A stretch of DNA of 63,124 nucleotides, counting the filler, from Olpidium bornovanus S191 (lineage: Eukaryota; Fungi; Olpidiomycota), in NCBI GenBank assembly GCA_017911155.1. It is 27 parts of 27 records of this genome, joined end to end, with 100 filler letters (N's around TTAATTAATTAA, not from the genome) between each part and the next. Parts side by side here need not be neighbours in the genome. Positions count along the whole stretch, not along the records: positions 40,991 to 44,222 come from JAEFCI010006839.1; 26 more parts are not named here. The stretch is one strand, 5' to 3'. Under the pieces are notes generated by a model. The model searched no databases. It was not told the origin of the DNA and saw only the letters and a list, made by a program, of their open reading frames with translations. Position numbers and translations under genes: made by a program. Below are positions 40,355-45,073 of this stretch, piece after piece (the stretch's first letter is position 1; each line of letters begins with the position of its first letter).

Positions 40355-41047
40355 CGCGCTGCCGACGAGAGTGACGGGTTTGGGGGGGCGGGGTTGAGCT
40401 ACCCGCCCACTCGCGGGCGCGGAGAGGAAGTTTGTCCCGGAAGGCGGGAAATTCGGACCGCCCAATTTCTTCGCGCACACGCCATCGCGCACCATTTACA
40501 CGTTTCATCAGCTTTTTCCGAATGAGGAAGCAGCACGGGCAGCGTGCGAAACCCCAGGCGCGTAATGTGCCAGAGGCAGCGCACGCCCACGGGCTGCAAA
40601 ATCCCCCTGCCCTGCGCGGCGGTTGGGGGAAAAGAGGCCCTGGGAATTTGCTGCGCCTCGCTGTGTTTGGCCGCGGCGGCAGGCTTTCCTCGCAAGCACC
40701 CGGCTGGCCACTAATAGGACGCGTGCGTGGTCGAAAACGCCTCCCGCGTCGGCGCCGAGGGTCGGCCCCGCCTGTGCTGAAGCCGCTTTATTCTGAATCG
40801 GATGAACGCTGGGCCATCTTTGCCAAATTTGAGCACCTGCAGATGTTTCGTTTGCCTTGAAGCGGACGGAAACCGCAACGCTGGTCCATGNNNNNNNNNN
40901 NNNNNNNNNNNNNNNNNNNNNNNNNNNNNNNNNNTTAATTAATTAANNNNNNNNNNNNNNNNNNNNNNNNNNNNNNNNNNNNNNNNNNNNAACGCGTCCG
41001 CAAGTTAGATAGCCAGCAACCGCGAGGTGAGACACACGCTTCCTTAC

Positions 41048-42399
41048 TTTCTTATGAGCAATCGCCTCAATGATTTTCTCGTCTCTTTCCCGCTTGGCAG
41101 AGCGGAGCATGCGACAATAGTTTTTTATACCAAACTCCGTCGCGTCTTGGTTGAGTTTCGTCTGAGCTGCTTCCGTTAAATCGTCCACGTATTCCAGGAT
41201 GTCGGTTTGTGCTGCGCAATCAGAGATAACTTGGAGCCCACGCGTCGAAACAGATGGCACGAGGACCCCATAAAAACAAAAAAAGGATATCACGCAGGAG
41301 GTCGTCCTCGTCTAACAGGCCCTTGCGAAACGCGTGCCCAGCTTCCACCCCACTTTAGATGCGTCGTGTTACCGGGTTTGGCGTCGAGGAAATTTCCGAG
41401 TTTTGCAAGCGCCGCAAACCGTTCTCCGCAGCGGATATTTACCCTGAGCTCCAATTATTTTGCGCGGTTTTGTTAGCAACCATAGCGTCCATCTCCTTCT
41501 GGTGCTTCAAAAGGTCAGTCCATTCCTCGTCGATCTGCTGCAGGCAGTCTTCCTCTTCGACTGGGGCAAGATGCGCGAAGCGTGTAAGCCAATCGGTCGT
41601 TGACCTGGCAAACCCGGGTCGTCCTGCGGTCACACCTTCCAAGCGTTCGTTTTCGACAAGATCTCGGTACCGCTCGAACTGAAGCTCTTGTTCGAGGTCC
41701 GGCTCATCGGCATCCGGTTCGGCTTCCCGCGAGAGCGGGAGGATGTCGAGCAGATTTCGGCCGTCGAAACGGTCCACTCTTGTTTCAGTGTCGCCCTGCC
41801 ACGGCATGCTGACAGACAAATCCGGAAACCATGAAATTTCTTCAACGCCTAAACAACACTCCAATACCACTTTGTTGCGATATGGTGTGCGTCGTTGCTC
41901 ACCGACCGCTTCCACTCACAGGTTGGAGGGATCTTCGTGGAAGTAGTGCTGTTTCGGCCGAGAGCGTATGTATTAGTTGTCGCTTTTGGACGGCTTTCGC
42001 GTTTCACGTGCGAGAACGTTCCGCATTGTACCAACTGTTCAACTCCCATCCCACCACCACCACCACCAACGGACCGACCTGTTCGGCGTCCAAGTAGGTC
42101 TTGCAAGTCATCCCAGTGATGCGGAGGAACTGGACAGGGTCACTCATCTTCGACACAGAAAACGACGCGACGGCAAAATGCAACAAATTAGCCGGCGCGT
42201 TCCGGCCACCTGCAAAAGTGCGGCACCCCGCATTCTGCGCGCCCGCGAGCCGAAAGCCGAGGGGGCCATCCGGGGGTGTCGCGCATAGCCTTTGCCGCAC
42301 CTTCTTTTCGAGGTCGGCCTTCCTCGCCTCTGCCCTGGCCTTTGCTCTGTCCATGGCCTTTTCCAGTTTCTTCCCCTGGCGGCGGGCTGCCCTCCACAT
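41048..42399 (-). CDS. CLASRP: CLK4-associating SR-rich protein (CLASRP/SFRS16, SWAP-like DRY_EERY domain), 3' truncated
   Basis: MWRAARRQGKKLEKAMDRAKARAEARK | MSDPVQFLRITGMTCK | MPWQGDTETRVDRFDGRNLLD...ELQFERYRDLV...KLNQDATEFGIKNY. This parallels CLASRP MWHEARK...DPAQFLQVHG..MPWQGD...IDRFD.R..LD...YERYR. Confidence 0.85.
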
Positions 42400-43690
42400 G
42401 GCGACGACGACGCCCTCAACGGGGTTCCCCGGTCGGTGATGTGGGAGGTCGGAAGGTGGGGGCGGGGAACGGGGGACCTGAGCCGACGAGGAAAGAGTGG
42501 GAGACCGAACGTCCGACAGCGGAAGTCGAGCCGACGCGAGGCTATAAGTCCGCCCGCGGGGAGCCCAGGGGTGGCGGAGAGAGGGGTAAAAGAGCGGGGA
42601 AAATCCGCGCGCAGACGCGGGGGTCTGCTGGGGGTGAGTTAACTGGACCCCGGACGCGGGCGGGGGAGGAAGCAGGGGGGGGGGCGTTTTGCCCAGGGGA
42701 GCTTGCGCCCGTTCGGACCCCGTTCGGCAGCATTCAGAAACCCACTTTTTGTTCGAGTTCGGTGCCCGGAAGGCACGGGCATAAACAAACAATTGCTGAG
42801 AACAACGTGAAACATCGTCGGCACATTCAAGTCACCGCGACGCGGTCGCCTTTGAAGAGCGCACTTCCGTCACTGACGGCAAAAGAAGAGAGAATGTTCT
42901 GTTTCTGGTACAGTGCATCGTCCCGTGCCGGCGCCAACCGGAGGAACCGCCAGGTGTGGCCTGGTCATCGGTATGCTACGAAGTTGTCCGGGGTAAAAGT
43001 TGTCTTGCCCCAGATGCAACTGTCCCGAAGGTGCAGCAAGCAGACCCGCCGGCTTAGATCATGAGGCGGACTCAAAGGTGTTGGCTGGCTTCCTGACAAA
43101 AGTACAGAATATTTTACATCGGGCATCTTAAGCGCTTAGATTGCGGTTGATTTTCCATTTTGGTGAGGCCACTGCTTCTTCATCATCCACTAGTCCCCCC
43201 CTGTAGCGCTAGACGAAAACTCCGCCTATGGAAAAAAAAAAAAAAAAAAAAAAAAAACGAAGGCCCACGATGCGAAGATCAAAACGGGATAAAAAGCAGA
43301 GAAATTTTTGCTCGATTGCTCTTACGGAACTAGCCTCTGCTTTGTCCGTCCAGTATATTTTATATGTGGAGCAGCTAGCCCATTTATGGCTTTGAAGGCC
43401 TGCCGGGAAACGGGGTTTTCCTTTTCGCGCTTGTCCTGCGCCCCACTTTCTCCGACGCCCGATCTCATACGGCGGAAAAGGAGGAACATAAATTTCCAAG
43501 ACTAAACTCCATATCCTCCGTGGTCGCGCCAAATTATCGTTTTTTTTTTTTTCTTTGCCTCCCTTGGAATCCTTTCTCCGGAGTGACCCTTTCGATGCCG
43601 TACCGATCTTAAACTTCGCACACTCCGAGCATCGTCAACCTCGCAAGCATCGTTGTCTCCAAGTGTTTGATGATTACGTCCGCGGGACTT

Positions 43691-43750
43691 TCGGCAGATG
43701 CGGCCCATTCGACAATGGTATCGGCAGGGGCGGCCCATTCGACAATGGTA
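43691..43750. repeat. 30-bp tandem duplication
   Basis: TCGGCAG(AT/GG)GCGGCCCATTCGACAATGGTA twice, 28/30 identical. Confidence 0.9.
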
Positions 43751-45073
43751 GCGTTATCTGCAACGCGTTAACGGATATGGTGGTACCGGGTGTTAATAAG
43801 TTTCGACCTCTTCGACGTCGTGAAGTCCTTTGTCCAGCTCTAAGGCGCTGTTGTTGTTTATGTGCAGCTTCGTTGCCTACCTGATGGCGAATTCCATGTT
43901 TTACTTGTTACAATAGGCGGTCATCGATCCTTGCCTCGCCGCGGTCAATCGTTTGACAGAGGTCTTCGCACTCGCGTCTCAAGCGGCCTTCGCGATCACA
44001 CCACATACAGACGCGCGCCTGACGCGAATGCGGTCGAGGCTCCCTTGCGGCGCGGGCTCCCCCCGCCGCGGGTGCCGCCGCCGCCGGCGGCTTGAGCGGT
44101 TATCGCTGAACTTCATTGCGGCGCTGGAGCGAATGCACCAGACAAACACGCAGGTCTCCTGCCTTTTCCCTTCGGTTTCGGTGCTGTTTCGCCCGGCATC
44201 CGGCGTCCCGCCGGTTGCCATGNNNNNNNNNNNNNNNNNNNNNNNNNNNNNNNNNNNNNNNNNNNNTTAATTAATTAANNNNNNNNNNNNNNNNNNNNNN
44301 NNNNNNNNNNNNNNNNNNNNNNCATGTTCTGCAGGATTTCAATTAAATCTTCCCATTCTTCTGCTGGACCTTTGCAAGTCACAACCATCGGTCACAAGAA
44401 GAAAAGTTTTAGCCGCCGATTCAATTTTTTCTTTCGCTTTAAAAAAGGCTGGGCACGGCACTTTCCGCAAAGAACGTCGAAAATCCGGCACCTTTTCGCC
44501 CTCTTCGGTCTGCATAGGGTCAGTATCGTGGCAGAAGAATTTTTCTTTTCTAGTTTCTTTTTCTCGTCCTAATCACATCGGCAGTCAAACGGTCATCGGT
44601 AAAATGTTTATCAAGTCCGTACGCACCTCGTACACTACTCACCACTTCTATGGGCTCCGCTCTACCTGACTTCTCATTTTTTTTCGCCCTTGCCTTGGCT
44701 TTGGCTGTGGTTGAAAGAACCGCGGTGGCAACCTATACAAAAGGGAGGCAATACCAAAGGCTTGTGAATTTTGAGACAGTCCGAAAAAGAACGCAAAACC
44801 AAAAACGAGGTTGTCCGCTCCATGCCTTCTCAATAATATTGGCGCTTGGCAGTTTCGTCTCGGCAGGGTAGGCAAACAGCGACGCCACCACCCTCCTCCC
44901 CACGCCCAACTTCCGCGGACGGAACCGAGAATGTCCTGAACTCTGCGCAGACAGACCGCCTTTCCCGCAACCTCCCCGAAAAAACCAAAAAAAAGAAAAG
45001 AAAAACGCCCGGCACGGCGGACGAACCGGGGTCAGCGCCATGACGGCTGCGTATCTCTGTCTCTCTCTCTCTG

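Follow-up and report, generated by a model that had tools for sequence, protein, structure and literature searches.

A probable U12-type AT-AC intron in a CLASRP-like gene of Olpidium bornovanus: RNA junction, incomplete removal and counterparts in Mucorales and Glomeromycotina

The 82-nt segment 41290-41209 on the minus strand of the analysed window (the whole stretch of DNA under study, 63,124 nucleotides with filler included) is, with a probability of about 0.9, a U12-type AT-AC intron in a CLASRP-like gene of the root-parasitic fungus Olpidium bornovanus. Its removal is the sole spliced junction found in RNA at this site, and AT-AC introns are present at the orthologous place in four other fungi; these two lines of evidence favour a genuine minor intron, which was the first of three options put forward in an earlier sequence-only reading of this DNA. 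Dependence of its splicing on the minor spliceosome (the U11/U12 snRNP) in Olpidium is probable, as judged from the sequence class of the intron and its conservation. U12-type introns are a known rare class, and the literature searched contained no report of minor splicing in Olpidium or of a minor intron in CLASRP/SFRS16.

The intron lies in JAEFCI010006839.1 of assembly GCA_017911155.1, a complete contig of 3,232 bases which occupies positions 40991-44222 of the window and whose GC content varies from 46 to 68% along its length. The JAEFCI01 sequences were binned as the genome of Olpidium bornovanus S191 from a non-axenic preparation of zoospores, which had been washed from the roots of cucumber (PMC7865070). 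Since this is a bin from a metagenome, the binning by the depositors and the fungal best hits are the grounds for assigning it to Olpidium. The minus strand of the contig was found to carry the 5' part of a CLASRP-like gene, whose DRY_EERY domain (Pfam PF09750) is located in the N-terminal part, in exon 4 (E = 4.8e-16; 59.7 bits against a cut-off of 25), and the contig breaks off at 40991, some 236 codons into this gene, so that the part in which a C-terminal Arg/Ser-rich region would be expected lies beyond it. The full HMMER search has given 104 relatives of the product, the best of which are fungal proteins of 370-580 residues with 42-59% identity over the matched stretches, and the phmmer matches include animal proteins named CLK4-associating serine/arginine rich protein (in Mercenaria and Periophthalmus). 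The only identical protein in the library searched is KAG5459441.1, "MAG: hypothetical protein [Olpidium bornovanus]". In the alignment, the spliced product, which starts with MWRAARRQGKKLEK..., is collinear with its relatives and has the shared motifs as well. The gene is designated here, at the level of homology, as a putative CLASRP-like splicing regulator of the DRY_EERY type.

The exon-intron structure of the gene is given in Table 1. The RNA contig has confirmed the upstream exon boundary which had earlier been placed from sequence only (acceptor ...CTAAAG/TGGGG at 41353/41352; here and below, a slash marks a splice site or joint), and from the unitig length the 5' UTR extends upstream to about 42682. 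In exon 7, RNA coverage is confined to 41179-41208. Intron 4 is a multiple of three in length and free of stop codons, so that its retention would add 25 in-frame residues; it is fully spliced in the RNA contigs. Upstream of the gene there is a run of 26 T (43232-43257, minus strand), and a run of 13 A is located at about 43540-43552. At about 43691-43750 on the minus strand, a unit containing CCATTGTCGAATGGGCCGC is present in two tandem copies 30 nt apart, which fall within a dubious called gene of 78 residues (43502-43738).

Table 1. Exons, introns and splicing signals of the CLASRP-like gene (window positions; X1 is the RNA contig run)
Feature	Position	Strand	Remarks and basis
Exon 1, coding part	42301..42399	-	ATG 42399-42397; MWRAARRQGKKLEK...; RNA contig and translation
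Intron 1, GT-AG, 153 nt	42148..42300	-	RNA contig
Exon 2	42079..42147	-	RNA contig
Intron 2, GT-AG, 130 nt	41949..42078	-	RNA contig
Exon 3, 29 nt	41920..41948	-	RNA contig
Intron 3, GT-AG, 111 nt	41809..41919	-	RNA contig
Exon 4	41636..41808	-	DRY_EERY core (MPWQGDTETRVDRFDGR...); RNA contig; Pfam PF09750
Intron 4, GT-AG, 75 nt	41561..41635	-	Joint 41560/41636 in RNA contig
Exon 5	41443..41560	-	RNA contig
Intron 5, GT-AG, 90 nt	41353..41442	-	Joint 41352/41443 in RNA contig
Exon 6, 62 nt	41291..41352	-	...GVEAGHAFRKGLLDEDDLLR + G; RNA contig and translation
Intron 6, AT-AC, probably U12 type, 82 nt	41209..41290	-	Phase 1, within Glu codon G/AA; X1 unitig, sequence and orthologues
Exon 7	41050..41208	-	AA + TDILEYVDDLTEAAQTKLNQDATEFGIKNYCRMLRSAKRERDEKIIEAIAHKK; 3' end at about 41050, placed by a putative GTAAGG donor
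5' splice-site motif ATATCCTTT	41282..41290	-	Full match to U12-type AT-AC consensus
Candidate branch-site element ATCTCTGAT	41219..41227	-	6/9 against TTCCTTRAY; putative branch A 41220
Alternative GT-AG pair shifted by 3 nt, GTGATA...GCAG	41212..41293	-	Present in sequence; use not seen in X1

On the minus strand the text at intron 6 reads ...GAC CTC CTG CGT G/ATATCCTTTTTTTG...TTATCTCTGATTGCGCAGCAC/AA ACC GAC ATC CTG. Two overlapping segments had been recognised here, 41290-41209 with AT-AC ends and 41293-41212 with GT-AG ends, and translation agrees that each is 82 nt long and each is in frame, the AT-AC product being ...DDLLRETDIL... and the GT-AG product ...DDLLPQTDIL.... The U12 5' consensus, which had been called perfect, is indeed perfect, and ATATCCTTT starts exactly at the junction seen in RNA. 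The motif ATATCCTT is present once in the 3.2-kb piece, and any match to it arose in just 2 of 100 dinucleotide shuffles. In U12-type introns, the branch consensus TTCCTTRAY usually lies about 10-15 nt, and up to about 30 nt, from the 3' splice site. The possible branch A pointed out earlier (41220) is 11 nt before the last intron base, a distance to the AC which suits introns of this type, and the weakness of its sequence match was confirmed. From the same candidate branch A to the alternative AG there are only 8 nt; branch-like CTRAY/GTAAC elements in three of the GT-AG introns of the gene were located by eye roughly 15-25 nt from their AG.

RNA mapping covered two contig runs (X1 and X4) and two raw-read runs (X21 and X15), out of which only X1 aligned: nothing from X4 did so, and X21 and X15, chosen by species label, had no reads on the gene. 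In X1, a unitig of 834 nt (depth 88.1) runs unbranched across the five GT-AG junctions and ends at 41290, where it forks into a spliced unitig of 59 nt (depth 47.2) and an intron-keeping unitig of 141 nt (41179-41319, depth 58.7). The spliced unitig joins 41207/41290 with an ambiguity of 1 nt, which is equal to removal of 41290-41209 (junction 41291/41208), and the mRNA at the junction reads ...CTGCGTGAAACCG..., as given by AT-AC removal; the support for the spliced junction is this single unitig, which comes from one run and extends 29-30 nt to either side. Thus, in a transcript check across 41209-41293, the AT-AC junction coding for Arg-Glu was found, and the GT-AG junction coding for Pro-Gln, ...CTGCCACAAACCG..., was not seen in the X1 contigs, which drop rare variants and could hide low-level GT-AG use. 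The large RNA runs of 2026 (X12-X24, with X21 and X15 empty for the gene) carry the same organism label as X1, and our guess is that this label may be that of the plant host and not of the fungus. In the soil metagenomes X28 and X29, two of the seven sampled intron-region words were present.

The removal of intron 6 is much less complete in X1 than that of the five GT-AG introns. Its unspliced share is about 55% of the k-mer depth (58.7 against 47.2), a rough figure as it is taken from assembler depths, and no retained path was found in X1 at introns 1-5, where the bins lying wholly inside the introns are at zero depth. The unbranched 834-nt unitig and the zero depth within these introns argue that the unspliced path at intron 6 is not a carry-over of genomic DNA. 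Moreover, all seven of the words sampled for the unspliced form alone (41195-41304) were found in nine RNA-like runs from three data sets, and these runs contain only 0.23-0.42 of the words of the whole contig; hence retention recurs across data sets. The RNA runs in which the gene is present are X1-X3, X27, X5/X7/X25/X26 and X9. The unspliced RNA reads ...DDLLRDILFLFLWGPRAICFDAWAPSYL and runs into the stop codon TGA at 41222-41220 once 27 residues have been read from the intron, and these residues are without homology.

The junction could in principle be an artefact, produced by template switching of the reverse transcriptase or by misassembly, with the segment being in reality coding or retained. 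The single short unitig which supports the junction and the deposited protein model which reads into the segment would fit with this. However, the two sides of the junction share 1 nt only, which leaves no repeat to switch on, and the junction falls exactly on AT and AC. It restores both the frame and the homology, whereas read-through gives the short tail described above, and orthologues have an intron at the same place. These points make an artefact barely conceivable, and removal of an AT-AC intron is retained as the explanation of the spliced unitig.

For the comparison with orthologues, annotated proteins were mapped on eleven loci, ten of them fungal and one from the annelid Owenia fusiformis, and the introns were read from genome sequence and gene models. 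The comparison has revealed an AT-AC intron at the same position in two Mucorales and two Glomeromycotina: Pilobolus umbonatus (L005; AAA G/ATATCCTTTTTTTG...ATCTTTAAC...TTTAC/AG GTC GAT), Halteromyces radiatus (L006; AAT G/ATATCCTTTTAC...ATCCTTAAC...CCTTAC/AG ACC GAC), Racocetra persica (L003; GAT G/ATATCCATTC...TATCTTAAC...TATAC/AG GAA GAT) and Ambispora gerdemannii (L004; GAT G/ATATTCTTTT...TTCCTTGAC...TTTAC/AG GAG GAT). The six remaining fungal orthologues among the ten examined have no intron at the site, namely the three chytrids Powellomyces hirtus (L002), Spizellomyces 'palustris' (L008) and Nowakowskiella sp. (L011), together with Paraphysoderma sedebokerense (L012), Calcarisporiella thermophila (L009) and Linnemannia elongata (L010). 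All four AT-AC orthologues interrupt the same Glu codon in phase 1, splitting it after the first base as in Olpidium, and follow the pattern G/ATAT(C/T)C(T/A)TT...AC/AG, with a 5' motif which is identical or has one mismatch; their lengths are 69-95 nt, compared to 82 nt in Olpidium. When the five introns are aligned, only the start G/ATAT.C.TT and the end AC/A are invariant and the rest does not align. The four also differ from the Olpidium intron in certain respects. Their branch sites are closer to the consensus (7-9/9) but at a greater distance from the 3' end (13-26 nt), they finish with ...TAC/AG whereas Olpidium has ...GCAC/AA, and they are AT-rich (22-24% GC) in comparison to the 48% GC of intron 6. 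As the AT-AC intron is common to Olpidium, Mucorales and Glomeromycotina, its age is at least that of the ancestor which Olpidium shares with Mucoromycota.

In the annelid (L007), a GT-AG intron in phase 1 is found two codons downstream (L007 4508-4775). It has a U2-type donor, G/GTAACT, and interrupts an acidic codon within an ungapped part of the alignment; it could be a shifted descendant of the fungal intron or could have arisen independently. In a cluster of Logan contigs of 3.2-4.3 kb (P0007), which are probably transcript contigs, uninterrupted relatives of the Pilobolus protein with 576-577 residues were observed, and these read ...LLKEVDIL..., as AT-AC splicing would be expected to give in a relative from the Mucorales.

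At the protein level, the AT-AC reading gives LLxE.DIL.YV.DL in all five fungi, as part of the motif LLxE.DIL.YV.DLT, and Glu occupies this column in all aligned fungal rows except three, of which one has His, another has Gln and the third is the Ambispora model before correction, also with Gln. This has a direct bearing on the second option of the sequence-only reading, a twin site at which the major spliceosome also removes 41293-41212 and a Pro-Gln isoform is made beside the Arg-Glu one. The GT and the AG are present, the frame is kept, and a minor isoform could be hidden by contigs which drop rare variants. Against this, X1 contains AT-AC-spliced and unspliced forms only, GTGATA is a weak donor, only 8 nt would separate the branch A from the AG, none of the four AT-AC orthologues has the upstream GT, and the change from Arg-Glu to Pro-Gln loses the conserved Glu. 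Since this GT, three bases upstream of the AT, is simply part of the Arg codon CGT, has no equivalent in the orthologues, costs the Glu and is not used in the RNA contigs, the GT-AG pair looks coincidental. The twin site thus lacks support and is considered improbable, and removal of the AT-AC segment stays the preferred account of the locus.

The AT-AC ends do not by themselves decide the spliceosome, and removal of this segment by the major (U2-type) machinery has also been considered. AT-AC introns of U2 type do exist, and with the Olpidium intron they have the AT and AC termini in common; the 6/9 match of the Olpidium branch site to the U12 consensus may also be taken in their favour. Known U2-type AT-AC introns, however, begin with a 5' site that is GTRAGT-like save for the A at +1, and are without ATATCCTT. 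The Olpidium site, ATATCCTTT, is the U12 motif and not ATAAGT-like, conservation of this full 5' motif extends over about five lineages, and orthologues have strong TCCTTRAC branch sites. A U2-type AT-AC intron is therefore regarded as highly unlikely.

A conversion intermediate between U12 and U2 types, the third option of the sequence-only reading, is disfavoured to the same degree. The branch site of the Olpidium intron is degenerate compared to those of the orthologues and a GT-AG pair overlaps it at -3, as might be expected of such an intermediate. On the other hand, the 5' site, which is the main determinant of intron type, is a perfect U12 match, and the AT-AC junction is the one used in RNA. 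Moreover, the usual route of conversion is from AT-AC to GT-AG at the same boundaries and not by a shift of 3 nt which alters the protein. The perfect 5' site and the use of the AT-AC junction thus leave this option unsupported as well, and a U12-type intron remains the best explanation of intron 6.

If spliced as U12-type introns are, the 5' site ATATCCTTT would be recognised by U11 and then by U6atac, and the branch site near the 3' end, probably A 41220, would be recognised by U12. Excision between ...CGT G and AA ACC... would then restore the conserved Glu codon; these steps are drawn from the established knowledge of the U12-type class. Slow minor splicing would in that case limit the output of full-length protein. 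An Rfam scan has given no snRNA in the 3.2-kb contig, its one match being to an lncRNA at chance level (E = 0.19, 14 bits against a gathering threshold of 90).

In comparison to the U12-type AT-AC introns of animals and plants, the Olpidium intron has the same AT-AC termini, the same /ATATCCTT start and a candidate branch site near the 3' end without the need for a polypyrimidine tract. It is likewise in a non-zero phase, is removed slowly or incompletely and lies in a gene of RNA processing. It differs in its degenerate branch element (ATCTCTGAT, 6/9) and in its zoosporic fungal host. According to PMC10639083 and PMC4133162, early-diverging fungi, among them Mucorales, Glomeromycota and some chytrids, possess minor introns and minor snRNAs, which Dikarya lack; the minor snRNAs of Mucorales are reported in PMC4133162. 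Larue & Roy 2023 (PMC10639083) describe minor introns in Rhizophagus irregularis, Basidiobolus, Spizellomyces and Neocallimastigomycetes; the main text and one supplement of that paper do not name Olpidium, this intron or the CLASRP-like family. The minor introns of early-diverging fungi belong to the same class and to the same part of the fungal tree as the Olpidium intron, are likewise absent from Dikarya, and have consensus signals which follow those of animals and plants.

With the RNA contig, this study provides direct evidence from a transcript for splicing of the minor type in Olpidium bornovanus, a lineage at the transition from flagellated to terrestrial fungi. As minor introns have already been documented in early-diverging fungi, current views are not overturned. 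The intron common to Olpidium, Mucorales and Glomeromycotina can serve as a datable marker for the loss of minor introns in fungi. A wider combination of these observations can be put forward as a speculation, rather doubtful when taken as a whole. In it, the intron would be an ancient minor intron which goes back to the Olpidium-Mucoromycota ancestor or beyond and is maybe of opisthokont age, with the GT-AG intron of Owenia as its converted and shifted descendant. The stop-containing unspliced RNA, about half of the total, would be a conserved switch which ties the dose of an SR-type regulator to the activity of the minor spliceosome, and the junction would be the first evidence of a working minor spliceosome in Olpidiomycota, the closest zoosporic relatives of land fungi.

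The deposited annotations of these genes show the practical consequence, in that pipelines which ignore AT-AC introns mis-model such genes and undercount the minor introns of early fungi. The CLASRP-like gene of Olpidium is divided between two models, both truncated, with 66 and 165 residues. The shorter one takes in exons 1-3 and breaks off where intron 3 begins (42399-41916; L001 1824-2307). The longer one (41807-41220; L001 2416-3003) opens at an internal Met in exon 4, translates through intron 4 and terminates at the TGA within the AT-AC intron, and exon 7 is in neither of them. Similarly, the public models of Racocetra persica, Ambispora gerdemannii and Pilobolus umbonatus bypass the AT-AC sites (at L003 1713-1798, L004 3039-3133 and L005 3022-3090, respectively), with probable local errors in the protein. 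A weak GTTAAA donor lying 17 nt downstream is chosen in the Racocetra model, which thereby gains DIHSYN, the Ambispora model takes another GT-AG pair with residues dropped, and the Pilobolus model has Asp where the AT-AC reading gives Glu.
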